Part shown: piece by piece, positions 8,001-62,259 of the stretch
Layout of the letters: each line of letters begins with the position of its first letter
Numbering within the stretch: the first letter of the stretch is position 1
NCBI GenBank assembly: GCA_965112735.1
Contig: OZ218950.1
Coordinates: forward strand, 1,178,001-1,242,000
Origin: Phaeosaccion multiseriatum
Lineage: Eukaryota; Protista; Ochrophyta, other classes
Direction: 5' to 3'
Length of the DNA: 64,000 nt
The notes under the pieces: generated by a model
Seen by the model: only the letters and a program-made list of their open reading frames with translations
Database searches by the model: none
Told to the model about the DNA's origin: nothing
Program-made: the position numbers and the translations under genes

Positions 8001-11000
8001 CCGTCACGTTGGACACCAGGGGAATGCGTGGAGCGCTGAATGACACCTGCCTCAGAACCTCCTCCAGCGCACCTACAGCGGGCTCCATCAGAGGAGAGTG
8101 GAAGGCGTGCGATACCTCCAGGGCCTTGCAGCCCACCCCATCTGCCGTCAGCCTCTCCACCACCTTGTCCACACCGCTGCGCGCTCCAGAGATCACGCTC
8201 GCGCTCGGTCCATTCGACGACGCCAGCACCACCTCGCCTGCCCCCCCCGCAGCGTCGATACTTGCCAAAGTCGCCTCCTTGCCTGCCCTCACTGCGAACA
8301 TCACTCCCTTGCCCTCGGGGCAGGCCTGCATGGCGGCTCCTCTCTTGGCGGACAGCATCAGTCCATCCTCCAGCGACATGACGCCGGCCACGCACGCCGC
8401 CACCACCTCGCCCAGGCTGTGGCCCATCACCATGGACAGCTCCACGCCCTCCGACTTCCAAAGCTCACACAGGGCGTACTCCAGCACAAACAGGCACGGC
8501 TGGCAGTAGCGTGTCTCCTTCAGCAGCGCTTGTGCAGTCTCCTCCTCCTCCTTCTCGTCCTCAGCGACCGCCGGGTACATGAGCTCCACCACAGACTTGT
8601 CCAGCCAAGCCCGCTCCATGAGCAACCTGCTGCACCGCTGTATGCACTCGCGGAACACGCCCTCCTTCTCGTACAGCTCTCTGCCCATGCCCACGTATTG
8701 CGAGCCCTGTCCAGTGAACACAAACGCCACCGGTGCACGCTTCTTGCTTTGCTGTCCATCCAGCTGCAGCAAGGCTTCGCCCCTCTCAACCAACGTTGGT
8801 CCGAAGCTGCTGAGCACTGCGTGGGCATTCGTGCCTCCAAATCCGAAGGAGCTCACCCCCACCACCACAGATCCATCGGAGTTGGTGGGTAAAGGGGTCA
8901 TGGAAGATGGGAACAGGACTGCAAGTCCCTCCATGTCGAGCTCTGGATTTTGCTCGATGAAGTGAAGATTGGGTGGAGCGGTCTTGTGCTGCGCCATCAG
9001 CACTGCTTTGATGAATCCGGCAATCCCTGCTGCACCCTCCAAGTGCCCAATGTTTGTCTTGAGCGCCCCCACGATCAAAGGCTTCGCTTCATCGCGGTCG
9101 TGGGCGAACACTCCTCTCAGAGCGCTCATCTCGATGGGGTCGCCGAGAGACGTGCCCGTGCCGTGCGCCTCCACGAAACTGACGTCGTTCGGACACAGCC
9201 CAGCGTCGATCAAGGCGTCTGCGATGAGCTGCTTTTGAGCGCCAGGGTTTGGAGCCGTCATCCGCGCGGTGGGCCCATTATGGTTCACAGCCGAGCCTCG
9301 CAAGACAGCCAGCACCTCGTCGTCGTTGGCAAGGGCGTCGTCTAGGCGCTTCACCACGATTGCTCCGCACCCCTCGCCTCTGACGTAGCCGTTGGCGGAC
9401 TTGTCAAATGTTTTACAGTGCCTTGAGAGTGAGGACGGAAGAGGGAAACAGGGGAGATTTAGCTAAGAAGGCGGGAGGAGAAGGGGCGATCTAAGGTTCT
9501 CACTCTACCTCCCTGAACGAAACAGTGGTGCGTAACCAGGTGCCTGCCGACTATAATACTAGCTTCCACCTGCCGGGGTATCATACTCATTCACTCTCTC
9601 CCTCCCTTCCTCCCTCCCTCCCTCCCTCCCTCCCTCCCTCCCTCCCTCCCTCCCTCCCTCCCTCCCTCCCTCCCTCCCTCCCTCCCTCCCTCCCTCCCTC
9701 CCTCTCTCACCCCCTCCCTCCCTCCTTCCCTCCCTTCCCTCCTTCCTTCCTCCCTACTCTCCCCCCAACGCACACTCACGCACTCACCCGTCTGGCGAGA
9801 GAAACCCTCCTGAGGAAAGGACCTTGAAGGGCGCCTCGCTGAGTAGCAGGTTCACTCCTCCGACGACAGCTGCGTCACACTTGCCCAATCGCAGGCTGCT
9901 GCAGGCGTTGTCCAGGGCGACCAAGGAAGAGGAGCACGCCGTGTCTACCGTTGAGCTCGGCCCCTTCAACCCCAGCGCGTAGGAAACTCGGTTGGCCAAA
10001 TTCGACATGGAGGCTCCTGACGCCACGTACACGCTCTCGCTTGCCTCGCCAGCTCCTTGGCTTGCTTTGACCTGCAGCCAATCGCTTCCAGCGCAGCCAA
10101 CAAAGACCCCTGTCTCGCTCTTGCGGAGACTGCGCTTGTCATAGCCTGCCCTGTGCAGCGCCTCGAAGGCCACCTCCAGCAGCACGCGCTGATTGGGGTC
10201 CATGCTTTCCACTTCCGCTGACGAAATACCAAAGAAGGTGTTGTCGAAGAGGTGGACGCCCTCTATGAAGCCTCCTCGCCACTCCTTAGAGCCGCTTCCC
10301 CACCGGTCTGCTGGAGCTGTAGAGATGCAGTCCGATCCCGTGCAAAGCATGCTCCAGAAACCTTGGGGCGAAGTCACTCCTCCTGGAAAGCGGCACGCCA
10401 TGCCCACCACCGCCAGCGGAGCTCGCACGCCTTGAGGCGAAGCCGAGGTGGGGCGCAAACCTCGCATTGGGTCTGTGGCAGCCCTTCCCATTACCTCGCC
10501 ATCAAGCCAGCCCACAAGCTCCGCCAAGCTGGGGTACTCAAAGAGCACATCGACGGTGGCTGTAACCCCAAAGTCCGTGTGAAGGCGATTCCGCACCTCC
10601 ACGAGGGCCATCGAATCCAGGCCTGCCTCCATCAAGGGCACATTGTCGTCCAGCGGGGGCATGTCTGCATCAACACACTTCAGCACGGTCGCCTTGAGCG
10701 CTTCCAGGAGAGCAGCGCGCCGATCCTCTGGGGAGAGAGCAGAGAGAGTCTCGCGCAGCTGTGAGAGGGCGTCTCCAGCTGGGGGAGGAGCAGATACAGG
10801 ACCCTCGCAATCATGCGCTGGTGTTGCCCTCTTCGGGAGGGGAAACTCTCGCGACGAGGGGAACCCCTGCCAAGGGGTGCCCACTCTCTCTGCTGCGCCT
10901 TTGGGCCTCATGCCGCCGTAGCTGCCCAAGATGACGTGGGCGTTGAAACCGCCAGCAGCGTAGGAATTCACTCCTGCGAGCAGCGTCGAGCCGTCGGAGC

Positions 11001-14000
11001 AGTAGGAAGAGAGGGGCGTCCTTCGGGTGGGCAGCGTGACGGGCACGCCCTCCAGCTTCAGGTTGGGGTTGACCTCCTTCAGATGTAGGTTGGCTGGGGC
11101 CTCTCGGTGCTGTACTACCAAGATGGCCTTGATGAGCTGAGCCATCCCTGACGCCCCTTCCATGTGGCCTAGAGTAGTCTTGACAGTGCCCACTACAAGG
11201 GGGGAGGCATCAGGCCTGTTGGGGGTGAACGCTGCCTTGAGTGCGCCTAATGAGTACCACGCGACGTGCGTGCGTGCGTGCGTGCGTGCGTGAGAGGGGG
11301 AGAGAGGGAGGGAGGGAGAGAGGGAGGGAGGGGGGGAGGAAGGGAGAGGGGGGGTAGGAGGGTGGAAGGGAGGGAGGGTAGGAGGGAGTGAGGGAGGGAG
11401 GGAGGGAGGGAGGGAGGGGGGAGGGATGGAGGGATGGAGGGAGGGAGGGAGGGGGGGGGGGAGGGAGGGAGGGAAGGAGGGAGGGAGGTAGGGAGGGAGA
11501 GAGGAGGGATGGAGGGAGGGGGAGGGAGGGAGGGAGGGGGAGGGAGGGAGGAAAGGATGGAAGGAGGAGGGATGAAGGGAGGAAAGGAGGGAGGGAGGGA
11601 CGAGTGGAGGGCACGAATACGCTTTATTATGTCTCATCACATCATCATTTTTCTAGTTGAGACGTAAGAGAGACATCACAATGATGGTCCAACACGAATC
11701 CCCTCCTTTAACCCCCTTTGCTTCCTTCAACGTACCCAGCTCGATGGCGTCGCCCATGACCGTTCCCGTGGCGTGAGCCTCAACGTAGCCCACTTCTCTC
11801 CCCTCGCACGCTGCCTGCCGCAGGGCGCTCCTCGCCAAGCTCTCTTGGGCGGCTCCCTTCGCGGCAGACAGAGAACTGCTGACGCCGCTGTGGCTGACAG
11901 CCGCTGCCTTGATGACGGCAAGGATATTGTCTCCGTCCTTGATGGCGTCCGGCAGGTACTTCAGCACGACGGCCCCGCTGCCCTCACTGCGCACGTAGCC
12001 GTCCCCGGCCGCGTCAAAGGATTTGCAGTACCTGGAGCAGGAGACGGGACACAGAAAGTAGAGTGGGGGGGGGGTGGATCAGTGTCCAAGCAAGGGACCA
12101 GAGAGAAGAGAAAGGGTGCTTTGGAAGGAAGAACATAGATGCAGCAACAGCTGCAGGAGCAAACTCACCCTTCCTTCGACAGAAGTCCTGCACTGGCCAG
12201 GGCGCCAAAGCCTTGGTCGTGGAGCAGCAGGTTGACCCCGCCAACGACGGCAGAGCTGCACTGCCTCAGTTTCAGACTGTTGCACGCGTTGCTAAGGGCC
12301 ACTAGGGCCGACGAACATGCTGCGTCTATGCTTTCGCATGGACCTACAAGGCCGAGTGTGTGCGAAATGCGGCCAGCGAAACATGCTCTGCTTGCCCCTA
12401 CCGACGTGTAGGCGCTGAGAGAAACACCATCCGCGCTCTCACGCAGCAAAGCCGGCCAGTCACTCCCTGCAGCGCCCACAAACACGCCAACTCGGTGACC
12501 TTCAAGCCTGCGTCGGCCCTCGTAGCCGGCTCTGTGCAGAGCCTCGTACGCCACTTCGAGCATGATGCGCTGGTTGGGATCTTGGGCCTCCGCCTCGGCG
12601 GTGGACATGCCGAAGAATGCGTTGTCGAACACTTCAACACCGTCGATGAAGCCACCTGCTCGCATGACGGGGAGAGGAGGAGCGTTCAAAATGGGGTGAG
12701 TGGGGCACAGAGACGGGCAAAGAAGCGCCCAGCAGCAAAGCTGTTCATGCCCTTCAAGACTAACATTTGCAAGCCTCGTGGACACAGGGTAAAAACGCAC
12801 CTCTCACTCCTGTTCCCAAGCCTCGCTCAAGGGGTGCATCGGTGACGCAGTCCTCTTTATTGCACAGCTTCGCCCAGAGCTCTTCCGGGCTGTTGCAGCC
12901 ACCGGGGAACCGACAGGCCATCCCAAGGACTGCAATATCGCCGCTGCTGCCGTCATAAGAAGGTACCCCAGGAATGGAGCGAGGCAGTCCGTCAATGCCA
13001 GGAAGTGTGTCCTCCCTGCTCGCACACAAGCGAGACACACCCCTCGCGGTGGGTGTGTGGAACATCTCTGCCACCTGGAGCGCCTAAGTACAGCAACGAG
13101 TAAAGAGATCCGACGGTCAACGACTACATTAGCAAACCATTTGGAACCACCGGCCACACCAGAAAGACAGCCCTCCGTCCCACTCACCTCGAAGCCTGGC
13201 ACCTCTACGCGGATGCGCGCTGTGACACTTACAGCGTCAAGCGAAGTGCCTCCCTCGGCGAACAAGTCGTCGCTGGCTCGCAGACCCGGCCGCCCAATGG
13301 CCTCTCGCATAATGCCGAGCACTTGACGGGTGGTGCCGTCCATAGGTGCGTCATCGCTGACGCTTAGGCTCCGTTGCTGGCCAGGGCCATGGTGACGTGC
13401 AGCTCGAATGGCTCTGAGAACCTCTTTCACGTCTCGCTTCCCGCTGCTCGTCATCGGTAGAGCCTCCATAGCCACAGCCGTGCTCGGCACCATGTATGCC
13501 GGTAGCAGCTTGCTCACTCCTTGCAGAACCATCTCAACGTCGGCACTAGGAGGTGTCAGAGCCGCCACAACCGTCTCGCGCTCGCTGTCCACGGCTGCCA
13601 CAGCACTCCTCACACCCTCTTGATGGAGCAGCGCAGCCTCCACCTCGCCCAGCTCAATGCGATAGCCGCGCACCTTCACTTGAGAGTCTCGGCGACCCCT
13701 AAACACCAGCGATCCGTCTGCCAGCTGCCGCACCAAGTCACCCTGTCCGAAGGTGTTAAGTTTGAGACGCGTCAGATCAGAACAGTGCCACAGGGCAGCA
13801 GAGAAAACCACCTCGGCCCCCCCCCCCCCCCGTTGCATTCTCTGCTGTTCACTGCATGACATGCCAAAAGCAAGCCAAATGTACACACAACACACGCACA
13901 CACACAAAGCCGCACACCCATGGGCAACCTTTTCCACTTACCGTACGATACACTCTGCGCTGGTCCCCCAAGAAGGGTGCGGGGATGAAGGCCTTTGACG

Positions 14001-17000
14001 TGAGCTCTGGGCGCTTCAAGTACCCACGGGCCAGCTGTCTCCCCCCAATGCACAGCTCGCCCTCCACGCCCTGAGGCACCAGCTGCAGACGCTTGTCCAC
14101 CACATACACTTGCACGCCGGCTCGAGGCTTACCGATGACGAACCCACTCGACGTGGCACCCGGACTGTACGCATGTGTGGTCGCGAAAACCGTCGCCTCT
14201 GTTGGGCCGTAGCTATTCACAAGGCGCACATGGTGCCGCCACATGTCCACTTGGCCTTCCTTGATCGGCTCCCCAGCCAATGCGATGGACCGTAGGGTGG
14301 CCTCCTTAGCTCCAGTGGTGATGTCTTGCGGTCGAAGCAGCGACAGCAGTGACGGGGTGCAGTACATGTCTGTTACCCTCAAAGACCGTATCAGCTCCGG
14401 CAGGTCGTTCAGCATGGAGCCCTTCTCTGCCAAGCAAAGCGTCGCCCCACACGACAACGGCCCGAACAGCGACGCCACAGACACATCAAATGTCAAAGCA
14501 GCACTCAGGAGCACACGAGAAGATGCCGTTATCGTCAGCTCCTCTTCGAAGAGAGTCGCCATGAAGCTGGCCGTGCTTCCATGCTCAATCATCACGCCCT
14601 TTGGCCGGCCGGTACTACCGGACGTGTGAATCACATACGCCATGTTCTCGCCCACCGCGTGGCACACAGGCTCCGCGGTACTCTCCACTTGCATCACAGC
14701 CACCACGTCCACACAGCTCACGTCTCCGACACGCCGCGCTAAGCTGGCATCGGCGGTTGCCAGCACCTCAGACTCGCCTGCTGCCTTTGCCGTCGTCAGA
14801 ACGACGCTCAGCCCGGCGTCTTGTGCGATCATCGACAGCCTATCGTCGGGATGCTCGGGGTCCAGAGGCACGTACGCCGCCCCGGCCTTGAGCACGCCCA
14901 GCACTGCCACAACCGCCTCCACGCAGTCCCCAGCAATCAGCACCCCCACCAGGCACTCCGGCCCCACGCCCCTCCCCTGCAGCATGCATGCCACCGCATT
15001 CGCATGCCCATTCAGCTCCCCGTAGCTCATCACCCGACCCGTCTCATGCTCGTGCAGGGCCTCCTGCTCCGGACTGCGACAGGCCATCTCTTCGAAAGCC
15101 GCGTGCAGGAGGGGCGGTGGTGGCGATGCTTCCTCTGCACCTCCCTCCGTGTCTCCATTGGCATCCCCCGCCACCAGTGCAGCGCCGCTCAACGTATCCA
15201 CCACCTTCACACGGTCCTCGTGTGCCAAGAGATTCAGCTTCCACACGCTCTCGCCCGGCCTGCCCACTGCACTCTCCAGCAGCGCCAGGAAGCTCCGCGC
15301 CAGGGTCTCCACTGTGGCCTGGTCGAGCACCGCCGTATTGTAGCACAGGCTGCCGTGCATGTCCGATGCACTGTCCGTGCTGCGCACAAGGCATAGCTCG
15401 ATGTCAGCCGTATTCTTCCAAGTATCCACACCCGCCTCCTGCAGTACAAAGAAAGCCTGCAGCGCATTACCACGACCATCTCTGCCCAGCTGGGCCCGCT
15501 CCACCACCTTGTGGAACGGTGCCTCGGCATGCTTCATGGCACCCAGATACGCGACCTGTACGCGAAGAAGCACCTCCCGAAAGCTGGGGCTTCCTCCCAG
15601 GCCCAGACGGAACGCGAGGGTGTTGACGAAGCATCCCATCACGCCCTCCAAGCCTTGCGCCACGTCTCTTCCGAAGTGCGCAGTGCCCACCACCACATCC
15701 TCCGCTCCGCACACACGAGCCAGCAGCACTTGGAACGCGCCCATGAGCCCCACAAACAGCGTGGCGGAGCTATCCGCGCACAGTTTACTCAACTTGACCA
15801 GCATTCCATTGGGTAGGACCAAGTCCACCCTCCCGCTTCCTCCCACACGGATATCTTCACGCACCATTTCTCCACTGAGGCTCATTTGGTCATGTCGCTG
15901 ACGGAGAGGCAGCTGCAGTGGACTGGTACCAGCCAGTTGACCCTGCCAGTATTCAAGCAGCTCCTCAATACGGCCTTCGCCGTCCAGCCGAGCTCGTTGC
16001 CACCTGGAGTAGTCCGCGAAGCTGAAGGGCAGAGCCGGTAGGTCTTGTGCGATTCCTCTCCCGGCCATGGCAGCCGCGCATGTGGCCTTGAACTCGCCCT
16101 GGAAGAGCAAGTAGGATGCACCATCAAAGATGCAATGATGGAAAGTAGATACTGCGGCATACTGCTCCTCTAGTCCGCTCTGCTGCGGGAGGTGTACGAC
16201 CAACGTACGCCATAGAGGCTGGCTCCGCTCCAAATCGAATGGCCGAGCGATATCGGCCTCGATCAGGCTCCGAGCGGCCCCAACACTGGTGGCCACGGCA
16301 GAGGAGAGACCAGCTGACACCACCGCGGCTGCCGTAGTTCCAAGCTGTACCTGCCTCAGAGAGCCCTGCTTTGTCCACTCAAGCGACGTCCGGAGCACAT
16401 CATGTCGCTCCACTATGCTGCCTAACACTTGTGCTATCATGTCCACAATTTCAGCGGATGTTCGTCCGGAGATCAGCGAGATTGGCAGCGGCAGCACAAG
16501 TGGGAGATTGTACGCGCTCTGCCCGCCAGGGGAAGTCGTCCGCAGTGCTATGTCTGAAAAGTACATGTGTTCCTGCTGGTAAGCCGCGGGGGCGTCAGCA
16601 TCCAAGGAGAAGTAGTGCGAAAGACCTGTTGCTTGATCATCAGGCTCACTCAGATGCCCCGAGTCCGCTCCCAGCACTTCCTCTTGGATCCATGCAGCCA
16701 TTGCAGACACCGATGGATACGTAAACAAGGCGCCGCTCGACATGGTGACACCACACCAGGCCTCGACTCGCTTGCCAAACTCCACGGAACCCATCGAATC
16801 GAGCCCGGCTTCCATCAAGGGCATCGTTGCTGTAATGGTCACGTCATCGCCAACACACTCGACTGCCATACCCGTCAGGACATGCTCGATCCTCTCCCGC
16901 CGTGCTGACTCCGGCAAGTGCAGGAGCTCCTCCCGCACCTCGGCATTAACCTTTGCCGCCTCACCACTTTCTCCGCGGTCCGTCAACTGCCCGAGAAAAT

Positions 17001-20000
17001 CGCTGTGCACAGGGGCCAAGCTCGCTCGGAATCTGGACCACCTCATGGCCGGCATGACGGCCACCTCCTGCACGTTGGCTTGCGATTGACTTGCAAGGAC
17101 GGCATCCAGAGTCTTCATACCTAGCGCCGATGAGATCAGGCCCACTCCGGCCATCTCCGCAGCTTTGGACACCATTTCAAGCCGCACCGCCATACCCACG
17201 TCGCCCCATGGGCCCCACTGAATGTTGGAAGCAGGAAGGCCAAGCTGGCGTCGGCGGTACCGCATCAGCCCGTCCAAAGCAGCATTGGCCCCCGCGTAGG
17301 CGCTCTGATTGGACAAGCCAAGCAAAGCGGAGGTCGATGAGTACGAGGCGAAGAAGTCGATCTCCTCCCTGCCGCTCGCCGCCCACTCGAGGCACAGCGC
17401 GTGGAGATTCCAACCTCCCTGGATCTTGGCGGCAAAGACATTTCGCACGTTCTCTTCCGTCTCGCCCGACAACATTCCCTTTGCGCCAGTCACCCCCGCT
17501 GCGTGAATCACACCCCGAATGTGAGGCAGCCCCACCAAGGCCGTTGCTACAGCATCTCGAAGCTGGCCCATATCGGACACATCGCAGGCCACGGCCACAG
17601 CGGTGACACTCTCCATGCTCTGCAGGGCCTGCCACAGCTCTGAAGCTTCCTCTGTCGCCCGGCCGCTTCGAGAAAGGAGGAGCAGGTGTCGAGCACCCTG
17701 GGAGACCAAGTGATTCGCCGTCGCCAGACCCAGCCCCCCCAGACCACCGCTGATCAGGTAGGTCCCATCCTCCCTGCACGTGAAGCGATCGACTCCTGCC
17801 GGCGTCAGATGGAGTGTGCTGGGCACCAGCCTCGGAGCGAGGATCTCACACCCTCGAACCAGCAGGTCCACGCCTCGGCCGCCGTCGCGGGCTCCTGCAG
17901 CCAGCGTCACAGCCTGGGAGATAGCTTGGGCTTCCATCTTCTCTACTCTAGGTCGTGCATCCTCAAACTGTGGATACATGGCATACTCAAGGTCGATGTG
18001 GTTCACATCGAGGTCGCCCCGCTCCAGGCGTACGCTTCTCACCAGTCCCACTGCCCAGCTGTCCTGCCAACCAGCACCGCTGTACACTCCCGTTGTCACC
18101 ACCGTGATCGGCATCACTGCCGCGTCCCCGTCTAAGCTCTGTACAGTTTGCACAAAGTGGATTGCCCCATCGGTAGCAGAGCCCGTTGCTGACGTCAAGT
18201 AGAAGAGATGGGCCCCACGTGGCTGCGCGTCCGAGCCGAGCGCCTCCACCATGTGCACCTCCACACCACTTGCTGTCGCCGCGCTTCGGACAGCTTCCAA
18301 GGCTCTGTGGTTGTTCGATGCGTGCTGCCCTTCGGCTGCCTCGGGAATCACGACGAGCCACGGAAGGCTGTCGGGCGCAGAAGCCTGCTGCGAAGCCGTG
18401 GGCACCTCCACCGCCTCCCACTCAACAACATAGAGCGGGCCCTGCTCAGCTTCACTCTGCGGCTGAGGTGCTGCTGTGGCTCGCGCTGTGTACCAAGGAA
18501 AGGCTTTGCGCGTTGGGAACAGGATATGCTCCTTGCCCTTACTCTCTGGCTGCTGCACTGTGCTCAGAGCAAATCGAAACGAATCCTCAGAGTTCTGCCC
18601 TCGTGTGAGGGAGGAGATCCACGCCAGCCCCTCGCGACGCTCGCACATGGCTCCCATGCTGCTCAGCACAGGGTTGGGGCCCACCTCAACGATGCTCAGG
18701 TCAGCCCCCCTCCCGTCTCCCATCCAGTGCTGCACCAGCGTGTGGATGCCTTCTGCGAACAGCACTGGCGACAGCATGTGTTGCACCCAATACGTCGCCT
18801 GCGTCACCTCCTCCTCTCTTACCACCTCACCCGTCACGTTGGACACCAGGGGAATGCGTGGGGCGCTGAATGACACCTGCCTCAGAACCTCCTCCAGCGC
18901 ACCTACAGCGGGCTCCATCAGAGGAGAGTGGAAGGCGTGCGATACCTCCAGGGCCTTGCAGCCCACCCCATCTGCCGTCAGCCTCTCCACCACCTTGTCC
19001 ACACCGCTGCGCGCTCCAGAGATCACGCTCGCGCTCGGTCCATTCGACGACGCCAGCACCACCTCGCCTGCCCCCCCCGCAGCGTCGATACTTGCCAAAG
19101 TCGCCTCCTTGCCTGCCCTCACTGCGAACATCACTCCCTTGCCCTCGGGGCAGGCCTGCATGGCGGTTCCTCTCTTGGCGGACAGCATCAGTCCATCCTC
19201 CAGCGACATGACGCCGGCCACGCACGCCGCCACTACCTCGCCCAGGCTGTGGCCCATCACCATGGACGGCTCCACGCCCTCCGACTTCCACAGCTCACAC
19301 AGGGCGTACTCCAGCACAAACAGGCACGGCTGGCAGTAGCGTGTCTCCTTCAGCAGCGCTTGTGCAGTCTCCTCCTCCTCCTCCTCGTCCTCAGCGGCGG
19401 TAGGGTACATGAGCTCCACCACAGACTTGTCCAGCCAGTCCCGCTCCATGAGCAGCCTGCTGCACCGCTGCACGCACTCGCGGAACACGCCCTCCTTCTC
19501 GTACAGCTCCCTGCCCATGCCCACGTACTGCGAACCCTGTCCTGTGAACAAGAACGTCACCGGCGAACTTTTCTTGCCTCGCTGCCCATCCAGCTGCAGC
19601 AAGGCTCGGCTCTCGCTCTCCCCTACCATCGTCGGTCCGAAGCTGCTGAGCACCGCATGGACGCTGGCTCCTCCCGCGCCGAAGGAGCTGACAGCAGCCG
19701 TGCGCCTCTCCCCGTCCCTGGCACTTAGTGGCACCATCGTAGACGGCAAAGTCACCGGAAAGCCATCCAAACGAAGCTCCGGATTGAGCTTCCTCATGTG
19801 GAGATTTGGCGGAGCAGATCCATGCTGAAGGACCAGCAGAGCTTTGATGAGGCCAGCAATTCCGGACGCACCCTCTAGATGCCCGATATTGGTCTTCACC
19901 GCCCCAACCACAAGGGGCCGAGCTTCCTCGCGGCCATGGCCATACACGGCCCTCAAAGCACTCATCTCGATGGGGTCGCCGAGAGAAGTCCCGGTGCCGT

Positions 20001-44000: not shown

Positions 44001-47000
44001 GCGTGCACCACTGTGAGCCACGCGATAGGCAGCGCTGCCATGTCCTCGAAGGTCCTGTTAGAAGGCATGATGGCCAGACACACGTCACGTGTCGTTACGT
44101 GGGAGCAGAAGCATCCCTGGTCCGGAAACCCGTAGACCTTGTCTCCCACTTGAAAGCGCGAGTTTCGCGATGCTCGAGTGACCACCCCCGATAGCTCGAT
44201 GCCAGGCTGTCCAGGGTCGCCAGGGTACAGGTCGAGCACGTTCAGCACGTCTCTGAAGTTGAGCCCCACCGCCTTGACACAAATTTCAATCTCCCCGTCC
44301 TGCAAGGCAGTGTCTCTCTCGGAAGGGAGTACGTCTCTGCGCTTCAAGCCTCCTTCGATGCTTCCCCTCGCCATGAGATCGAAGGAGAAGGGAAGGCTGA
44401 CTACCGAGGAGCGAGTCAACTGAGGCGTCTCGCACTCTCCTCCTTGCACACGCACGTCCTGACTCTGAAGGGGAAGACACAACACCAAGCTCATGTCCTC
44501 CACATCCGCTTCCACGACCATGATCTGCATCTCTGGCCGCTCGATACGAACGGAGCGAATCATGCCAAAGACCAGCATGTGTGCCCATCCCTCGCCCCCA
44601 CCGCTCAGCGTGTCGTGTAGTAGCACCATCAAGGGGAGTTGTCTCTTGGCCAGCTGCTGCGTTACCGCCAGCAGCTTCTGTGCTTCCTGCTGAGCGGCGC
44701 TGGCTGACGACCTTGCCGTCTGTCCCTCCTCTCTCCCACCGCCGATCACGTACAGCACTCGCGACCACTCGCCCCTCTCCAAGGCCCTCACCACATCCTG
44801 GTCATAGGCACGCTCCTGCACACGCAGCGTAACGTGCTCGGGCACTGATTGCTCAATACGCTTCACCAACGCTGTAGCTGCACTTACTCTATCTACCAAA
44901 GCCAGCCACGTCTCCTTCTCCACACCATCCTTCCCCGTGGTGGTTGCCAGAGCCAGAGCCTTGTCTGGCTGCCACTCCAGATAGTATAAGGCTCGACGAA
45001 GAGGGTTCAGGAGCGTAAAGCCCTTGGCCCTCTGCAGCTTGACGCCCTTCATGGTCACGAGCACGTACTGGCTGTCAAAGTCGGCAATGACAATGTCAAA
45101 GTTGACGCTGTCGCGCTTGTCGCTGATCTCGGTGAGCACGGTATGCACCCACACCTTGTCTCCTCTGATGGCGCCCTTCGCAACCACGTCATTGCATCCA
45201 GCTGGCAAGAACGTACCACCCTTGGTTAGATCAGAAGGTAGAAGCGCAAGCATGGTGTGTGCGGCACTGTCCAGCACGGCGGGGTGGAGGTAGAATCCAC
45301 GCACCTCCCACTCAGAGCACAGGCTGGGGTCCTGCGCTGTCGCCACGGACAGAGCCTGTCCCTCGGCAGCGTACAAGCGCTCTGTTCGCCTGAAGCGGGG
45401 GCCGTAGTTGAAGCCGGCCTTGGCGAACGTGGCGTACAGCTCACCCGACACGTCTCGCTGCCCCACTGCCTCCTGGATGCTCCTCACGTCCATCATTGCA
45501 GTAGCCTCTCTTGCCTCCAGCACCACTGACGCCGCCCTGGCCACAGCCTCACCTGCCTTGCCGCGGGAGCCGCCCGTGATCCGCGTCTTACCGTGGGCAG
45601 AGAGGAACACGTTCACCTCCGAGCATGCCACCGTCGTGGACCCATCCACCATCCGCTCCACGCCAGGTACACGGACGCCTGCCACCTCCAGCGGGGCCGT
45701 GAAGACGAGGCCCTTCATGCGCACCTGGCCATCTGCGGGGAAGGCCTCGCCCCTCAGCAGCGTGGCCAGGGCCAGCTCAATGTAGCCCATGCCCGGCATG
45801 AGCACCACCCCCCACTGCGTGCTCCTGCAGCAGGCCCTTGAGCCTTGGAGAGAATGGGCAGGACAGCAGCACCCCGCCCTTCTCATCTCGCACCCCTCCA
45901 CTCGGAAATAAAGCGTGATTATCGCTCTTGTACCACGGGAAGGCCACACGATTCGGGAAGAGCGCCTCCTCCTTGACGAAGCGGCCCCCATCGCTTTTCA
46001 TACCAGCCGTCAGTACGGAGTCACTCTTCTCCCCATGGCTCCTCAGCAGCACGTGTGCATTCGTTCCTCCCGCCCCGAATGAGCTCACCCCCACCAACAT
46101 ATCTCCCTCGTCCTCCAGCTGCACCATCACCGACGGGAGCTGCACGGGGAAGCCGTCCATGTCCAGCTCCGGGTTGACGCTCTCGAGGTGAAGGTTGGCG
46201 GGCACGGCGCGGTGCTGCAGCATCAAGACGGCCTTGATGAGCCCGGCAATGCCCGCCGCACCCTCCAGATGGCCAATGTTGGTCTTGACTGCACCCACCA
46301 CAAGCCGGAAAGAGTCGTCACGGTTCTTCCCGTACGTGGCCTTCAGAGCGCTCATCTCGATGGGGTCGCCTAGCGAGGTTCCCGTGCCGTGCGCCTCCAC
46401 GATGCGTATCTCGGAGCCCTCTCGACCGGCCTCACGCAGCGTCGCCTCGATGAGTCTCTGCTGGGCGGCGGGGCTGGGGGCCGTGAGGCGGGCACTGGTT
46501 CCGTTGTGGTTCACGGCACAGCCCTCAATCACAGCGAGGACCGTGTCTCCGGCAGCGAGGGCGTCATCCAAAAGTTTCAGCACAACGGCACCGCATCCTT
46601 CACCACGCACGTATCCGTTTGCCGACGCGTCGAACGTCTTGCAGCGCCTGAGAAGGGCATGGGTAGCGTGAGGGGAGTTTTAGTCGGCGGCGCAAGTAAA
46701 GTCGGACGAGACGGAGGAGCAGAGAGCGGAGGTACAAAATGTGTTAGAAGTCGTACTTAGCACTTACCAGTCCGGCGACAGGAAGCCGCTGCCCTGAATG
46801 TCCTCAAAGGCCACTGGCCCGAGCAAGCAATTGACGCCCCCGACGACAGCGGAATCGCACTTGCCCATGCGTAAGCTGCTGCAAGCGTTTTCCAAGGCCA
46901 CCAGCGATGACGAGCACGCCGTGTCAGTGGTCATGGACGGGCCCTGCAGCCCCAGCACGTACGAGAGCCGATTGGCAACGCCACATTGGATGCGACCCAT

Positions 47001-50000
47001 AGTGCGGTATACTCCAGCCCCTACATCCTTGCCCTGGTAGCCCCAGTCGCCGAGGCTCATCATGCCGATGAAGACGCCTGCCCGACTGCCCGCCAAGCTT
47101 GCTTTGTCGCACCCCGCGTTGACCAATGCCTCGTATCCAACCTCCAGCATCACTCGCTGGTGCGGATCCATCGCAGCCGCTTCGGCAAACGAGATGCCGA
47201 ATACGGCGGGGTCAAACATTTCCACCTCAGCAATGAAGCTGCCTTGCCAATCCTCGCTCCCCTCTTTTCCCGCCCACCGGTTCAGAGGGGCAGTCTGAAT
47301 GCAGTCAGTACCTGCGCGCAGCATTGACCAGAAGGCCTCTGGACTGTTCGAGCCCCCCGGAAAGCGGCACGCCATGCCCACAATAGCCAGGGGGGCAGTC
47401 ATGCTACCTCCAGCCGGTTCAGCATTCCTCTCCTCATATTCACCCTCCTCAGCCCCCAAGACCAAGCCCTCGAGCCACTCAGCCAGCGCTGCCACTGAGG
47501 GGTGACTGAAGAGCACGTCGTTGGGGACCGGCACGCCGAAGCGAGCTTGGAGTCGACTCCGAAGCTCCACCGTAGACATAGAGTCCAGCCCAGCCTCCAT
47601 CAAAGGCCTCAAAGCGTCGAGCTCGATGTCTGCTTCCCCAATGCATGCTTTCGCCATCTCCATGATTAAAGCCTGCAGCATGGGCTTTCGCTCTTCCTCC
47701 GACAGCTCCAGTAGGTCGCGCTTAACCTCGGTAGTCACACTGTTGCTAGCCTTGTTCTGCGGTCCCACCATCGAAGCCTCTCTAACGAGAGCATCAAGCA
47801 TCCCCGGGTTGCCAGCCGCCTGAGAAAAGGCGGGCCAGTCCATGCCAGGCAGGACCAAGAGCTCGCGCGATACCGCAGATGGGGCTGACACGCCGGCATC
47901 AAGCGCCGCCATACCTAATGCCTTACTGATGAGCCCAACGCCGGCCATCTCCAGACTGGCCATGGCAACTTCGGACCGAGCGGCCATGCCAGCTTCGCCC
48001 CACGGCCCCCACTGCAGGGCCACAGAGCTGGAGTGACCGAGACGCCGACGATGCTGCATCAGCCCGTCCACAGCAGCGTTGGCTGCAGCATAGTTGGCCT
48101 GGCCTGCATTGCCTAGCACACCTGCCATGGATGTGTAGGACACAAAGAAGTCCAAGGGCCAGGCCATCTGCAGCGACAGCTCGTGCAGATTCCAAGCGCC
48201 CTCCACCTTCGGCTTGAAGACCTCTTCGATACTCTCGGGCGTCTGGTCCACCAGCAAGCGATCGTCGAGCACGCCGGCAGCGTGGATGACACCTCGCACG
48301 GGCGGCATGCTGCTGAGCGCCGTGCCTAGGGCCTTCTCAAGCGACTGCGCGCTAGACACGTCGCACGATACTGCCTTGGTGCTCACCCCGCCGGGCACGT
48401 TGAGAAGCTCCTCCCACAGCGACTGGGAGTCCGCTTTGACCTTTCCCCCTCGCGAGAGCAGTACAAGATGACGAGCTCCTTTATCAGCCAAATGCTTCGC
48501 AGTCGCCAGCCCCAGTGCCCCCAGCCCACCGCTGATAACGTAAGTCCCATCTCGCACGACGGGAATGCCACACTCAGGGCTACTGAGCACAACCTTCCCT
48601 ATATGCTTCGCAGTTCTGAGGAAGTTCATTGCCTCCGCAAGCTCATCCCTCAAGTCGAACGCCTTCACTGGTAGCGCCTCGGCCCTGCCCGCCTCACTGT
48701 CCGCTGTCAGCTGCTCCAGCCTAGCGAACGCCCAGCCCTGCTTCTCGGCCTTGAAGTCGTCTGCTATCATGGAGTCCAGCGCAATCAGCTCGTACAGCAC
48801 GTCGGGCCTGGCAGCCTTCATCGCCTCCCCGGTCCACACGCCTCGCTTGCCGATCTCCATGAAGCGCCCGTTCTTCGTCAGCAGCTCCAGAGAGTAAGGG
48901 ATGAAGTTGTCGGACAGGCAATTGAGCACCACATCCACCTTTGCAGCTCCCATGGAAGCCTTGAAGGCCTCCGCATCTCTCGACGACGCAACGTGCTTCA
49001 CGCCCAGGCCTCGTAAGTAGGCGTGCTTCTCCTCGGATCCAGCAGTGGCGTAGATCTCCGCTCCGATGCGCTGAGCAATCTGCACGGCCACCAGACCCAC
49101 TCCATCTGACGCGGCATGGATGAGCACCTTCTCACCACGCTTCAAGCCAGCGAGTTGCTCAAAGGCGTGCACCACTGTGAGCCACGCGATAGGCAACGCT
49201 GCCATGTCATCAAAGGTCCTGTTGGAAGGCATGATGGCCAGACACACGTCACGTGTCGTTACGTGGGAGCAGAAGCAGCCCTTGTCCGGAAACCCGTAGA
49301 CCTTGTCTCCCACTTGAAAGCGCGAGTTTCGCGATGCTCGAGTGACCACCCCCGATAGCTCGATGCCAGGCTGCCCAGGGTCGCCAGGGTACAGGTCGAG
49401 CACATTCAGCACGTCTCTGAAGTTGAGCCCCACCGCCTTGACACAAATTTCAATCTCCCCGTCCTGCAAGGCAGCGTGTCTCTCGGAAGGGAGTACGTCT
49501 CTGCGCTTCAAGCCTCCCTCGATGCTTCCCCTCGCCATGAGATCGAAGGAGAAGGGAAGACTGACTACCGAGGAGCGAGTCAACTGAGGTGTGAGATATC
49601 GTCCGTCTCGCACCCAAACGTCCTGCCCCAGTGATGCAATGGCCCAGCACTTGGGCAGGTCCTCGCTGCCCACGTCCACCACTGTCATGGCCAGCGAAGG
49701 GTGCTCGACACGAGCGGTTCGAATCATGCCGTACACCCAGTGATGCCTCCACCCCTCGCCGCCACTCAGCGTGTCCTGCACCAGCACCATCAAGGGAGCT
49801 GGCCTTCGTAAGAGCTGCTGTAGCAACGAGAGGAGCGTCTGTGCCTCTTGGCTGGGGCTCTGCTGCTTGCCGCCGAACAAGGTGCACACCACACGGCCCC
49901 ATCCTGCTGGCGCTTCTGACGCGAGGGTGGAGTCGTCGATGATCTTGACCTCCCTCTCCGTCAGTGTCACAGATATGGGCAAGCTCTCTTTCGCTGCCTT

Positions 50001-53000
50001 GTCCAAGCTACCACGAGCGCCGCTGGTGAGGAGCAGCCAAGCTTCCTCTCGCTCTTCCACGTCACCTCTGCTGCGGGAGATGGAATCGTTGGGCAGCCAC
50101 TCTAGAGAATACAGCGCTCGGCTGACAGGGTTGGTGCGGGAGAAGCCTCGGGCGAGCTGCATCCGGAAGCGGTTAAGCTGCACGAGCACTTGCTTCGTCT
50201 TGAAGTGTGCTATCACGATGTCGCACTCGATCGCAAGAGCTTGAGAGTCCACCTCCTTCACCACCGCATGAACCCACACCTTCTCGCTCGTGATGGCCCC
50301 TCGCACAAGCACCTCTTCGCAGCCGGTGGGCAAGAAGACGGCGGCAAAGGCCTTGCTCGTCAGCTCCTCCGGCAAGAGCGCCAACATCGTGTGCGCGGCA
50401 TTATCCAACACTGCAGGGTGAAGGTAGAAGCCGTTGATCTCCCACTCCGCCGATAGGCTGCCATCCATTGCCGCCGCAACCGACAAGGCCTGTCCACTGG
50501 CTGCGAAAAGGTGCTGCGTTCGGACAAAGCTGGCACCGTAGTCATAACCAGCACCGGCAAGCTTGAGGTAGAGCCCCTCGGCGATGTCCTCGTCCCCCAC
50601 CGCGGCTCTCACCCGCGCCACGTCCAATGTCTCTGCCTCCGTCCTTGTGCACAATTGAAGGGAAGTCGCCTTCGCCACCGTCTCTCCAGCCTTGCCGTGG
50701 GGACCTCCGATAAACTGCACGCTGCCGCGGGCAGTGACGAAGGCACTGACTTCAGAAGCGACCACAGTGGTGGAGCCCTCCACCGTACGGTCCACATCGG
50801 GGGCACGAGCGCCTGCAATTTCCAGTGGAGCCATGAAGACCAGGCCCTTCAGGACCACTTGCCTCTCACCAGGGAAAGGCTTGCCCTTCAGCAAGGCGGC
50901 AAGGCCAATCTCGATGTACCCCATGCCCGGCATGAGCACCACTCCTCCCACCGCGTGATCCTGCAGCAAGCCCTTGAGCTGAGGGGTGAAGCGGCATGAG
51001 AGGAGTGTTCCTCCCTTCTTCTCGACGACGCCGCCGCTTGGTACCATCGCATGCGCCTACTGCTCGAACCAAGGGAGCGCACGACGGGTGGGGAACAGAG
51101 GTGTGGGCTTGCCCAGTACTGCCGCCACTGCTCTGTCGAACGAGGCGGTGTCGCTCCCCTCCCGCCGCATGGACGGCTGCCACATCACGTCCGACCTCTC
51201 TCCCTCGCATTGCCGCGCCATGTTGATCAGCACAGAGCTGGGCCCAATCTCTACCACTCGTACACCCTCAGGCCTCTCCCGGAGCAGCGTGGTGATACTC
51301 TCCACGAACAGCACCGGCGATAGCATGTGTTGCACCCAGTACGCTACCTGCGTCACCTCCTCAGCCTTCACCACCTCGCCTGTCACGTTGGACACCAGGG
51401 GGATGCGTGGGGCGCTGAATGACACCTGCCTCAGAACCTCCTCCAGCGCACGTACAGCGGGCTCCATCAGAGGAGAGTGGAAGGCGTGCGATACCTCCAA
51501 GGCCTTGCAGCCCACCCCATCGGCTGTGAGTCTCTCCACCACCTTGTCCACAGCGCTGCGAGCACCAGAGATCACGCAGGCCTGAGGGCCGTTGGAGGAC
51601 GCCAGCACAACCTCGCCTGCCACCCCCGCAGCGTCGATCCTTGCCATTGCTGCTTCCCTGCCCGTTTTCACTGCGATCATCACTCCATCCCCCTCGGGGC
51701 AGGCCTGCATGGCGGCTCCTCTCTTGGCGGACAGCATCAGCCCGTCCTCCAGCGACATGACGCCGGCCACGCACGCCGCCACTACCTCGCCCAGGCTGTG
51801 GCCCATCACCATCGACGGCTCCACTCCCTCCGACTTCCACAGCGCGCAAAGGGCGTATTCCAGCACAAACAGGCACGGCTGGCAGTAGCGTGTCTCCTTC
51901 AGCAGCGCTTGTGCAGTCTCCCCCTCCTCCTCCTCCCCGTCCTCATCGACCGCCGGGTACATGAGCTCCACCACAGACTTGTCCAGCCAGGCCCGCTCCA
52001 TGAGCAGCCTGCTGCACCGCTGCACGCACTCGCGAAAGACCGCACGCTGTTAAGGCACCAAAAGAGAGACAGAGAGCGGAGGGAACAAGAGAGAGAGACG
52101 AATATGAGAACGAGGGCAGGTGGGCCGAGGTGATGGAGCACAACAGAGGCAATGCCAAGAGAGGACTGAGACGGAGATGGTGCGCGCAACGAATCAACTA
52201 ACCTCGTCGTAGAGCTCCTTGCCCATTCCGGGGTACTGCGAGCCTTGCCCCGTGAAGACAAAGGCGTGCGCAGGTGAGGCGACCTCCGTATCCTCACTCC
52301 CCTTCGGCGCTTTCGAGACCCCTCCCTCCACTCTCGGCGCAGCGCTGCTCAGCACCACATGGGCGTTGGTGCCTCCTGCTCCGAACGAGCTTACTCCTGC
52401 GTACAGCACCTCCTCGCTGTCATTGGCGTGTCCCTCCTCGCTACCCAATGGAGATAGTCTCGACGAAGGGAATGCCACCGCAAATCCATCAACACCAATC
52501 TCAGGATTGAGCTTGCCGAGGTGCAGATTGCGTGGAACAGCTCGGTGCTGAAGCGCGAGGATGGTCTTGATGAGTCCCGCGATGCCTGCGGCGCCCTCCA
52601 AGTGACCAATGTTGGTCTTGACCGCTCCCACCATGAGTGGGAAAGAGCTCTCCCGCCCTTCTCCGTACGCGGCTTTGAGAGCGCTCATCTCGATGGGGTC
52701 GCCAAGAGCCGTGCCCGTGCCGTGCGCCTCCACGAAGTGAACCTCGCTGCCCGCTACACCCGCCTCCTCCAAGGCTGCCTGCATCAGCGTCTGCTGTGCG
52801 TCTGGACTGGGTGCTGTGAGCCGCATAGAGCGCCCATTGTGGTTCACGGAGCTTCCCCGCACGACGGCCAGGATGTTGTCTCCGCTGCGCTTCGCGTCGT
52901 CAAGCCGCTTCACCACCAAGGCGCCGCAGCCCTCTCCTCGGACGTAGCCGTCAGCCGCTGCGTCGAACGTCTTGCAGCGCCTTCGGTAGCAGCACGAGGC

Positions 53001-56000
53001 AGATGGGGGCAGAGAAGGAAGGACAAGCCGATGAGAGGGATGATGCTTGTGTTTACCTGTCAGCAAGCCCTCTATGACTCTACTCGAGCTACAGGAGCTC
53101 GATGCTCCCCAAGGCCAGCCCCCCCATTGTCCGTTCTCCGTACGTACCAGTCCTTGGACAAGAAACCTCCCTTGTCGAACTGCTCGAAGGAACGGGAGCT
53201 GAGTAGCAGGTTCACTCCTCCCACAACCGCAGCTTCGCACATGCCGAAGCGAAGGTAGCGACAAGCCGTGTCCAAGGCAACGAGCGAGGAAGAGCAAAGC
53301 GTATCAACAGATATGCTTGGGCCTCGCAAGCCCAGTGCGTAGGACAGGCGATTTGCAGGGCAGCCTGCTGACTCGCCCATCATGGAGTGAGCTTTGGTGT
53401 CACCATCCTTGTTCAGCGCGGCCCAGTCGCCGTGCTGCATGGAGCCCACGAACACTCCGGTGTTGCTATTGCGCAGCGTGTCCATGGAGAAGCCTGCCTC
53501 GTGCAGCGCCTCGTAGCCGACCTCGAGCATGATGCGCTGAGTGGGGTCCATGGCCTCCGCCTCGGCTACGGAGATGCCAAACGTGGCGTTGTCGAACATC
53601 TCCACGCCGTCGATGAAGCCTCCGTGCCACTCCTTCGCCGCACCAGTGAGTCTTCCCGAGGGCATGGCGGCGATGCAGTCCCTTCCCTCCAGCAGCATGG
53701 ACCAGAAAGCGTCAGGGCTGTCTGCGCCTCCAGGGAAGCGGCACGCCATGCTCACTATTGCCAGCGGGGCAGAAGCGTCGCCCCCCCCTTGAGACGATGG
53801 CATCCTCCTGGGCAGGCGCAGGCTGCTCGCACTTCCCTCCATGAGCGCTGAGCCCAACCACTCCGCCAAGGCCGCCACGGTGGGGTGGGCGAAGAGGGCG
53901 GCACTACTAACGGGAATGTCCGTGAGCAGGTGCAGACGCTGCCTCAGCTCCATGAGCGCCAACGAATCCATGCCAGCCTCCATGAGAGGTTTGTCCATGT
54001 CGATGCCGACAGAGCCTGCCGTGCTGGAGAGGGCGATATCGGAGATGACGGATCGAAGCCTCTCTTGGCGTTCAGCTGGACTGACACCGCGGAGCTCTAC
54101 TGCCAAGGAGTTTTTTCCGGCCGCCGATGTCGGTGGGGCGGGCAGCAGCTTGAAGGCCTTTCTGCTCGTGAACGGGGAGGCTCTCACGTTGGTCTTCTCC
54201 GCGTGTGAGATGGCCGTCCCCTCCAGGATGACGTGGGCATTGACACCGCCAAACCCAAAGGAGTTGACAGCTGCAAAAGGAGCAGAAGTAACCACAGCGA
54301 GCAGAAGGGCATGGTGAGAACAGATTCAGCCATTATCCATCACACGATAGCTCATACCCTCTAAAGTCCTCCTTAACTTGTCTCAAGAAGACGCGAGTGA
54401 GTGAGTGGGAGTGGGTGAGTAAGTGATGAGTGAGTGAGTGAGTGAGTGAGTGAGTGAGTGAGTGAGTGAGTGAGTGGGTGAGTGAGTGAGTGAGTGAGTG
54501 AGTGAGTGAGTGAGTGAGTGAGTGAGTGAGTGAGTGAGTGAGTGAGTGAGTGAGTGAGTGAGTGAGTGGTGAGTGAGTGAGTGAGTGAGTGAGTGAGTGA
54601 GTGAGTGTTACGAGATAAGGCATCCCAGTATGCCTTCAGTATTATCCAAATAGAGTGAGTGAGTGAGTGAGTGAGTGAGTGAGTGAGTGAGTGAGTGAGT
54701 GAGTGAGTGAGTGAGTGAGTGAGTGAGTGAGTGAGTGGTGAGTGAGTGAGTGAGTGAGTGAGTGAGTGAGTGAGTGTTACGAGATAAGGCATCCCAGTAT
54801 GCCTTCAGTATTATCCAAATAGAGTGAGTGAGTGAGTGAGTGAGTGAGTGAGTGAGTGAGTGAGTGAGTGAGTGAGTGAGTGAGTGAGTGAGTGAGTGAG
54901 TGGTGAGTGAGTGAGTGAGTGAGTGAGTGAGTGTTACGAGATAAGGCATCCCAGTATGCCTTCAGTATTATCCAAATAGAGTGAGTGAGTGAGTGAGTGA
55001 GTGAGTGAGAGAGTGAGTGAGTGAGTGAGTGAGTGCGGGAGTGAGTGAGTGAGTGAGTGAGTGAGTGAGTGAGTGAGTGAGTGAGTGAGTGAGTGAGTGA
55101 GTGAGTGAGTGAGTGAGTGAGTGGCTGAATGACTGAGTGAGTGGTCGCAGGAAACGTTTTTTAATAAGGGCCCCAACGCACCTCCGATTCGGGTGGAGAT
55201 GGGGGTCATGCGTCCGGGGATGGGCAGCAGAGCGCTGTTGCCCTCCGTCTTCAGTGCAGGGTTCAGCGTGGACAGGTTGAGATTGGGAGGCGCTTGGACA
55301 TGCCTGAGCACCAGCACCGTCTTGATGAGCCCTGCAATGCCTGCCGCAGCCTCCGCGTGACCAAGGTTGGTCTTGATCGCTCCAACGACGATACGGCGGG
55401 CTGTTGCCAGGTCGTGGTCTCCGTAGGTTCCGGCGATGGAAGCCCACTCCGTGCGGTCCCCGAGGGGCGTGCCCGTGCCGTGCGCCTCGATGAAGCTCAC
55501 GTCGGACAGAGCGATGCCCGCCTCTGCTACGGAGTCCAAGACCGCGGCCTTCTGTGCCGCTTCGTTGGGAGCGGTGAGGGTCGTGCCGTGGCCCGTGTGA
55601 TTGATGCAGGAGCCTCGAATCACCGCCAATATGTTGTCTTGGGCCTCTATGGCGTCTTCGTGGCGCTTTAGCACGACAGCGCCGCAGCCCTCTGCTCGCA
55701 GCCGCAGGGCACACGCAGCAAATGGAGGTGACTGGAGGGTGAGCTAGGTGGTGGTCGAGCCGTGCTCATCAGGTTTATAGAACAAGGATAATCTCAGACC
55801 CAGCCAAAGAAACACTCTCCGCTCATCCTGCACTTCTCTCCTTCCCTTTCCTCCCCCCTTCCTCTCCCTTTCCCTTTCTCCTTATCTGTGCCCCTGCCCC
55901 TCTCCATATCTCCGTCCCGCCCTCTCCCTCTCTGTCCCGCTACCTCTCTCGCTCTCCCGATCTTTCTCTCCATCTCCCCTTCTCTCCCTCCCTGTCTCAT

Positions 56001-60953: not shown

Positions 60954-62259
60954 ATGCAGCGAGGAGTCAGTATCGAGGTAGGAGAGGGAAAAAAGGGAAG
61001 GAAAGGAAGACACCTCCGAGGGGGGTGAGCGGACTCTATCTTTCCCTCTCCTCTCCTCTCAACCTCTTTTACCTCCTTCCCCCCTTTTTCTCTCTGCACT
61101 ACCATCTTTCCCCGCTTGCCTTTGCCTCACAGGCTAATCGCCTGTATGAAGCCATTATCGGGGGGGACAGCGTCCAAAGGGTGCGAGCGGCCGCGAGGGC
61201 CCTCGTCGCCAAAAACGGAGGGAGGAAGGCATGCTTGGATGGGCCCCTCGATAACGAGCTGCGTCCTGCCCTGTACACAGCTGTATATGTGGGGAATGGG
61301 GACATAATTGCTCTTTTGCTGCAAGAGGGGGCGTCGCCGAATGTTGCAAGGCCTTCAAATGGCTGCACTGCACTGCTGCTCGCAGCTGAGCATGGGGATC
61401 CTGCTGCGGCACAGCAGCTGCTTTCAGCGGGTGCTAATCCCAACCACGTGGATGACAGAAATGTTTCCGGCTTCACCCCCTTGTTGATGGCCGCACAGCA
61501 TGGGCACGACAGCGTGACGCAGCTGCTGCTCAACTCCGGGGCAGATGCGGATATGGTACACCGCGGCGGATGTTCTCCGCTTGCTATTGCGAGCCAGGAA
61601 GGGCATGGTATTGTGGTGGAGCAACTCATCAGAGCTGGTGCTGACGTCAACAAACGTAACCATGAAAAGAGGAGAACGGTGTTGATGCCAGCGTGCACCT
61701 ACGGCCACCGAAGTATTGTACGAAAACTGCTCAGGGCTGGTGCCGAGGTGAATGCACTGAGTGGCGACGGGTTCGGAGCGATACACTTGGCGTCTACAAA
61801 TGGCCATGCTCGTGTCGTGGAGGAACTCGTCTCAGGAGGGGCCGATGTGGAGATGCCCAACAGTGAGGGCCTCACAGCTCTGTACATGGCTACTTATCTT
61901 GGCCACAGGGCAGTGATCCGTGAACTCTTGTCTGCGGGGGCTGATCCGGACAGGGGGGCAATGTCAATGGGATGATGTCCTTGTTTGTTGCGGCAATGAA
62001 GGGTCACACTGGGGCGGTGATGGAGCTTCTCTCAGGAGGGGCCTCCCTGGCAAAGGCTCTGACTCAGGCACGAGGGAGTCACGCTGTAACCTCAATCGAG
62101 CGCCTTCTGGCCGCGGACAGACAGCACTTTGCGTCACAAAGCGCTTTGGACCTGATGCGAGGCACTGACCCTCTCTTTCGCAAGGAAGGGAGGCTGAAGG
62201 TGTCCCAGAGAGAGCTTAGCCCTGAGGTGCTGCAGGAGGTGGCGGAGGAGATGGCATGA
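60954..62259 (+). CDS. Ankyrin-repeat protein (about 8 repeats); exon 60954-60977, intron 60978-61132, exon 61133-62259 with a frameshift at the G6 run 61953-61958
   Basis: Repeats GCTALLLAAEHG, GFTPLLMAAQHGH, GCSPLAIASQEGH, GLTALYMATYLGH with LLxxGAD/N; GAG|GTAGGA donor and pyrimidine-rich CAG acceptor; one extra G joins ORF 61025..61975 to ORF 61972..62259. Confidence 0.88.

Follow-up and report, generated by a model that had tools for sequence, protein, structure and literature searches.

How does it come about that every chain-extending ketosynthase (KS) encoded by one giant gene is interrupted by an intron at the same codon and in the same phase, and what has this intron to do with the multiplication of the modules around it? 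The gene lies on contig OZ218950.1 of the ochrophyte Phaeosaccion multiseriatum (assembly GCA_965112735.1), of which positions 1,178,001 to 1,242,000 form the window analysed here (64,000 nucleotides (nt), numbered from its first letter). The window (G+C content 60%) carries a single huge minus-strand gene, which starts at about 57,900 and extends past position 1. Pfam scores far above the cut-offs in every exon mark it as a modular type I polyketide synthase (PKS) of the hybrid kind that includes nonribosomal peptide synthetase (NRPS) units. The domain order, read from Pfam scans of the open pieces, begins with a loader-type KS (KS0) and an ACP and continues with nine extension modules (KR, with or without AT, with or without DH-ER), AT-bearing and AT-less modules being interspersed along the gene. 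Every one of the nine extension KSs has the catalytic Cys and the first His. Eight also show the second His (GH motif), which in KS8 lies past an extra intron. The host genome (67 Mb in 22 contigs) contains more than 150 matches to the KS C-domain in about 20 related loci, this gene being one of them.

The answer favoured here is that one old intron was inherited with its host sequence, that module number changed at the level of DNA, and that the two halves of the KS were re-paired there as well; taken as a whole, this account is probably correct. Module duplication itself is as in other PKSs, whereas an inherited KS intron that marks the history of duplication was found in no paper.

The ketosynthase intron and its inheritance

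A preliminary description of the window, made from its letters, had placed nine introns at one site of the extension KSs, and all nine are borne out at exactly those coordinates: each has GT..AG ends, lies in phase 2 and cuts the same Gly/Trp codon, which is TGG or GGG split after its second base. In the order of transcription on the minus strand they are j1 (52981..53147, 167 nt, split codon TGG), whose counterparts in paralogous genes are 94-99% identical; j2 (46648..46767, 120 nt), of which the last 16 nt alone match j3 and j4, so that the similarity switch between KS halves falls here; j3 (41427..41603, split codon GGG) and j4 (36204..36380), both 177 nt and 100% identical; j5 (29972..30131) and j7 (20258..20417), both 160 nt and 91% identical; j6 (25533..25687, 155 nt), again GT..AG in the canonical codon; j8 (12032..12168, 137 nt), within the divergent KS that follows an NRPS module; and j9 (9422..9787), at 366 nt the longest canonical intron and largely a GGGA/GGAG repeat. 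When the flanks are joined in silico the motif LSx(D/E)(W/G)(R/Y/H)CK(T/S)FD...GYVR is regained, and bacterial KS homologues are uninterrupted at this site, beyond which the N-terminal KS model of Pfam (PF00109) runs on for 30 positions. The ends and the restored motif are those of spliceosomal GT-AG introns, and in the introns checked the unspliced reading soon meets a stop. With about 1260 codon-phase positions possible, nine introns on one codon and phase are not due to chance. The near-invariant Gly of bacterial LSPDG-RCK has become Trp (split TG-G) in five of the nine KSs (donors 53148, 46768, 30132, 25688 and 20418), and both states are found among close relatives.

Between the introns lie four clean exons of 5046 nt (36381..41426), 6072 nt (30132..36203), 4284 nt (25688..29971) and 5115 nt (25532..20418), all on the minus strand. 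They have the coordinates first claimed for them and are stop-free in the predicted frame. Pfam also upholds the claim that each encodes a KS C-half, processing domains, an ACP and the next KS N-half: PF00109 positions 223-252 and PF02801 come first, processing domains, KR and ACP follow, and PF00109 positions 1-222 close the exon. An AT is present in two of the four (with DH, ER and KR in the 6072-nt exon, with KR in the 4284-nt exon), and DH-ER in three, including the AT-less 5115-nt exon (DH, ER, KR) and the 5046-nt exon, which is the twin of a frameshifted exon discussed below. The lengths are divisible by three because the flanking introns share one phase in an intact frame. This symmetry is automatic and adds no evidence of design.

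The pattern extends far beyond the window. When the whole genome was searched in six frames, PF00109 gave 121 large matches, 116 of which end at profile positions 220-233 (of the other five, three reach 252, one reaches 243 and one is truncated). Every junction was read in the window and in a further 188 kb carrying three paralogous genes (R1, R2 and R3), and all 37 proved to be GT..AG, in phase 2 and at the same codon, the motif CK(T/S/A)F(D/E) being present in 32 and a variant of it in five. The assertion that every extension KS bears the intron also holds, since the sole exception in the window, KS0 (about 56602-55285, minus strand), has Ser in place of the catalytic Cys. KS0, the first KS in each gene, reads through the canonical codon and has an intron of its own, about 0.5 kb long (approximately 56208-55710), some 16 codons downstream of it. 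Another KS lacking the intron, at C1:2405706-2406965 with counterparts at C3:381710 and C8:1933227, shares 42-49% identity with the others; its Cys is retained, but HGLGS and GN replace HGTGT and GH, changing the second His to Asn, and it looks like a non-elongating enzyme. In the window and these three paralogues, it is thus the predicted non-condensing KSs that lack the intron.

Each KS half and each exon was handled by itself in searches, alignments and trees. The tree of N-halves set 16 intron-bearing KSs against 26 outgroup KSs, one of them from Chrysoparadoxa and the others bacterial. It unites the 16 in a single clade (UFBoot 98 / SH-aLRT 90) and leaves KS0 and the intron-less KS outside. 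A quick tree of the C-halves gives the same grouping for 14 of the 16 but does not resolve two long branches. Outside this genome, a DNA pattern combining acceptor and exon gave five chance matches and no KS in one metagenome scan, and word searches of a collection of 5.8 billion proteins with a 1427-aa exon and with a 238-aa segment (ACP end and KS N-half) returned nothing above 63% identity; no spliced product of the gene is thus recorded there. The short single-domain matches on long contigs were rejected as bacterial fragments, continuous across the intron site.

Sequence divergence separates the introns sharply by KS type. Among duplicates and paralogues of one type, introns are 65-100% identical with many length changes and their flanking exons 91-100% identical; the introns always diverge at least as fast as the exons beside them. 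Introns of different KS types cannot be aligned at all, although exon halves of the same types are 42-77% identical in protein. Judged by these comparisons, the pattern is the signature of one old intron copied together with its host sequence. One spliceosomal phase-2 intron would have entered the Gly codon of LSxDG-RCK in an ancestral condensing KS, probably a single time and before the condensing clade multiplied, and would have been copied with each duplication, whether of single modules, of blocks of them or of entire genes. Equal phase in every copy would then force exon lengths to multiples of three, and the cassette-like appearance would be a by-product. The homologous introns of recent duplicates, the single clade and the census of 116 in 121 uphold the proposal that the modules multiplied after the intron was gained. 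The intron would serve as a built-in marker of how a eukaryote multiplied its assembly-line modules: the expansion that gave about 116 ketosynthases would postdate a single gain, and the intron would separate condensing KSs from loader and non-elongating ones.

The state of this gene copy

Whether the exon arithmetic of the window says anything about function depends on the condition of the copy. Two lesions are visible in it. An in-frame TAG stands at 51059..51057 (minus strand), at the AT/DH junction; it would be a derived C-to-T change in this copy, because two paralogous genes have CAG and CAC there. The second lesion is in the 5044-nt exon at 41604..46647 (minus strand; KS2 C-half, DH, ER, KR, ACP, KS3 N-half), which differs from its twin by one substitution and by a run of six instead of eight G residues at 45813 (45807-45815), the only indel. 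The difference stems from an error of assembly or from a recent slippage.

The gene copy may accordingly be a young pseudogene or may be locally mis-assembled, in which case its exon lengths would be uninformative on function. This possibility deserves to be taken seriously, although it is not the one expected to prove true. The TAG at a codon that is CAG or CAC in paralogues speaks for it, as do the shortfall of 2 nt in one of two tandem copies that are 99.9% identical and the condition of the sister gene R1, where one KS is truncated and a KS intron contains a 12.7-kb retroelement. Against it, the four other exons are open across 4.3-6.1 kb, the ratio of nonsynonymous to synonymous change (dN/dS) between the window gene and R2 is 0.35 over one exon of 2023 codons, and homopolymer errors are a common assembly artefact. 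The intron pattern is, moreover, independent of the state of this copy.

The insert in R1 starts about 12 nt past the donor of a canonical KS intron (C1, about 1290883-1303617). It contains, on the opposite strand, an open reading frame (ORF) of 2099 aa with reverse transcriptase, RNase H, a DNA_pol_A_exo1 3'-5' exonuclease and integrase, and looks like a Ty3-type retroelement.

Module duplication and the pairing of ketosynthase halves

Self-comparison of the window revealed three large duplications: a tandem duplication at 99.9% identity with a period of 5223 nt (35577-41442 against 40800-46663), a two-module duplication at 90% (16687-24781 against 26401-34480) and a third at 97% (2588-9175 against 13413-20011). 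A block of 643 nt, made up of 16 nt of intron and 627 nt of KS C-half, occurs three times on the minus strand (35577-36219, 40800-41442 and 46021-46663). The end of this block falls about 11 residues beyond the GTNAH motif and 627 nt from the acceptor. Duplicated tracts in the window end 16 nt into an intron, in the linker after the KS, in the linker after the AT, at the end of the ACP, 247 nt into a KS C-half and in an A domain. In paralogue R3, BLAST tracts that end 3-5 nt from acceptors were discounted, as they show no more than the point at which coding similarity gives out. The extra module of the window gene is best explained by unequal crossing-over between two 643-nt blocks, because paralogue R2 has one module fewer and yet already carries the block twice, at 97.8% identity. 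The series of B- and C-type KSs reads B,C,C in the window gene, C,C in R1, B,C in R2 and C,C,C in R3. Since paralogues differ in module number, variation in chain length is written in the DNA. Module number would change by unequal crossing-over together with gene conversion between near-identical KSs, ATs and linkers.

The AT segments of otherwise diverged modules are 90-93% alike (7747-8730, 18577-19560, 28270-29274, 34538-35536 and 51305-52034), which suggests that ATs may have been homogenised apart from their modules.

Much of this resembles what has been described for the modular type I PKSs of bacteria and algae: neighbouring modules are near-identical, paralogues differ in copy number, and tracts end at the KS-AT linker, the post-AT linker and the end of the ACP (PMC4661987; PMC6718629). 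The difference is that each condensing KS here also bears one inherited spliceosomal intron. That intron does not coincide with the module boundary. By the updated definition a PKS module ends downstream of the whole KS, about 10 residues beyond GTNAH (PMC11294587; PMC6718629). Five KSs yielded the GTNAH motif, at 193-195 residues from the acceptor, which places the intron in the middle of the KS, about 205 residues before the updated boundary. The preliminary description had matched the intron to that boundary. It was right that the Cys-bearing part of the KS shares an exon with the upstream ACP, as in the AT...ACP-KS module of Keatinge-Clay and colleagues (PMC11294587), but the intron is not at the boundary. 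With about 193 residues between it and GTNAH, the intron splits the Cys from the two catalytic His, and these go with the downstream module. The updated boundary does show up in this gene, but elsewhere, where a DNA tract ends about 11 residues beyond GTNAH.

The intron may matter for the pairing of KS halves. Typing of 600 nt on either side of 32 junctions distinguished seven N-types and six C-types, paired one to one except that N_B and N_C share C_B. Junctions with N_B and those with N_C are 71-78% identical upstream and 99.7-100% identical downstream, and the change of identity lies inside the intron, 16-25 nt before the acceptor. Genome-wide typing used N_B, N_D, N_E, C_B, C_C and C_D as queries, N_C being scored by its identity to the N_B query. 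It counted 7 N_B-C_B, 14 N_C-C_B, 4 N_E-C_B, 12 N_E-C_D and 20 N_D-C_C pairings. C_B is therefore found behind three N-types (N_B, N_C and N_E), which are 60-73% identical to each other, and N_E before two C-types (C_D and C_B). The four N_E-C_B loci lie on C7 (about 558.1-559.5 kb) and C2 (about 973.2-974.6, 2663.0-2664.4 and 4370.4-4371.8 kb). There, the 50 residues leading up to the intron match N_E at 94-98%, and the 50 that follow it match C_B at 94-98%, against 86-90% for true C_D.

Trees of the two halves had been set beforehand as a test of shuffling, and the outcome is divided: the trees agree on types, yet at least two re-pairings switch at the intron. The halves were mostly inherited together, and the sequences give real but limited support to shuffling at the intron. 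Tracts of conversion or crossing-over would run through conserved KS coding DNA and halt where homology ends, in the fast-drifting intron. By limiting conversion tracts in this way, the intron would let N- and C-halves acquire separate histories. The natural hybrids point to a mid-KS junction that evolution has tolerated and that might serve as a fusion point in engineering. The linker at which bacterial PKSs are currently engineered lies about 205 residues further downstream.

Several points weigh against giving the intron this part. Only about one in eight of the sharp tract ends in the window is intronic, where introns make up 3.7% of the region, and a "seam" at the intron is not statistically secure from the window alone. 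The N_E-C_B switches were mapped at the protein level only, to within about 50 codons. Selection, and not the intron, could also account for the re-pairing, by favouring hybrids whose join falls between the two structural halves of the KS. For the account as a whole, splicing at every junction was deduced from sequence.

A stronger version of the argument would make the intron the main engine, with module duplications produced by exon shuffling through intronic recombination. In classical metazoan exon shuffling, symmetric exons with flanking introns of the same phase are duplicated, deleted and reordered in frame. The present gene is similar in its equal-phase flanks and in having one exon type behind different upstream exons, but its units are multi-domain blocks of 4-6 kb, their phase is 2-2, their boundary passes through a catalytic domain, and most ends of rearrangements are exonic. 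The upper end of the 99.9% tandem tract, 16 nt within j2 or j3, favours intronic recombination, as do the switch of the N_E-C_B and N_B/N_C-C_B pairings at the intron and the recurrence of exon types such as C_B...N_D after different upstream exons. Introns of different types, however, share no alignable sequence for homologous exchange, the 8.1-kb and 6.6-kb duplications of the window begin and end within exons, and all 20 N_D-C_C pairs are intact. Most tract ends lie in coding DNA, at linker sites that are hot spots in bacteria (PMC6718629). The intron is therefore unlikely to have been the main engine, and unequal crossing-over and conversion in the DNA around an inherited intron remain the preferred account.

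Splicing, parallel gain and the remainder of the gene

The preliminary description had further suggested that skipping of exons could tune chain length or hydroxylation. This would be a splice-programmed assembly line, in which equal-phase introns let the cell skip module exons of 4-6 kb and make shorter or differently reduced products, differing by whole extension units. Any donor can indeed be joined in frame to any acceptor with Trp or Gly at the split codon, since every acceptor supplies G and the codon becomes TGG or GGG, and natural KSs with one C-half type behind three N-half types indicate that hybrids at the seam are tolerated. Equal-phase flanking introns, all in phase 2 here, are nevertheless what common descent alone would produce. 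The flanking introns showed no conserved regulatory sequence: within a type they are 65-100% identical, diverging faster than exons and sharing no conserved block, and between types no alignment is possible. Intron lengths of 112-366 nt contrast with exons of 4.3-6.1 kb, so that skipping would have to bypass an acceptor about 150 nt away for one more than 4 kb away. Where splicing is intron-defined, passing over a near acceptor for one kilobases away is unlikely. Module number, besides, already varies among paralogues in the DNA and needs no splicing to do so. Bypass of the frameshifted exon, which had been suggested as a benefit, would not rescue the gene, as the preceding exon carries the TAG. 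Programmed skipping is thus very improbable, and the full-length transcript would be the product. If true, skipping would add a new level of control over natural-product structure, a eukaryote-only programming of polyketide length; nothing found supports it, and neither a repeated KS intron nor splice-level skipping of modules was found described in the literature.

Among the closest known counterparts are the PKZILLA genes of the haptophyte Prymnesium parvum, eukaryotic modular PKS genes that are likewise giant and interrupted by GT-AG introns and that are read as single transcripts (bioRxiv 10.1101/2024.01.29.577497). They have 34 introns over three genes, with 17 exons in PKZILLA-1 and 12 in PKZILLA-2, and thus differ in not having one intron per KS; the passages of that preprint on the topic mention no repeated intron site.

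Parallel gain, by which each KS acquired its intron separately at a hot insertion site in the motif, is scarcely credible: the unalignable introns of different types and a KS0 intron just some 16 codons away are what it would lead one to expect, but codon and phase are identical in about 116 KSs, the exon flanks TG-G and GG-G make a poor proto-splice site, the intron-bearing KSs form one clade and the intron is visibly inherited in recent duplicates.

The three remaining inter-intron stretches of the minus-strand gene are composite. The first (52980..46768) encodes the KS1 C-half, AT, DH, ER, KR, ACP and KS2 N-half, and its AT, the first of the gene, is cut by a phase-0 intron of 156 nt (52202..52047). 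The second (20257..12169, 8089 nt) encodes the KS7 C-half, AT, KR, ACP, an NRPS C and A and the KS8 N-half, with at least two further introns. The third (12031..9788, 2244 nt) contains the KS8 C-half with an extra intron, an ACP and the KS9 N-half; KS8 has extra introns both near its start and in its C-domain. Beyond j9, the KS9 C-half, AT, KR, ACP, C and A occupy 3022..9421 (minus strand), which from 247 nt past the acceptor is the 97% copy of 13413-20011. Pfam places the two NRPS C-A units at 13,849-16,600 and 3,022-5,800 (minus strand), and their A domains are also interrupted. A (GAGT)n microsatellite of 750 nt (about 187 units, 54395-55143) lies between the KS0 C-half and the ACP exon and is probably intronic. 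Upstream of the PKS gene, on the opposite strand, an ORF of 316 aa at 61025-61975 (plus strand) encodes ankyrin repeats.

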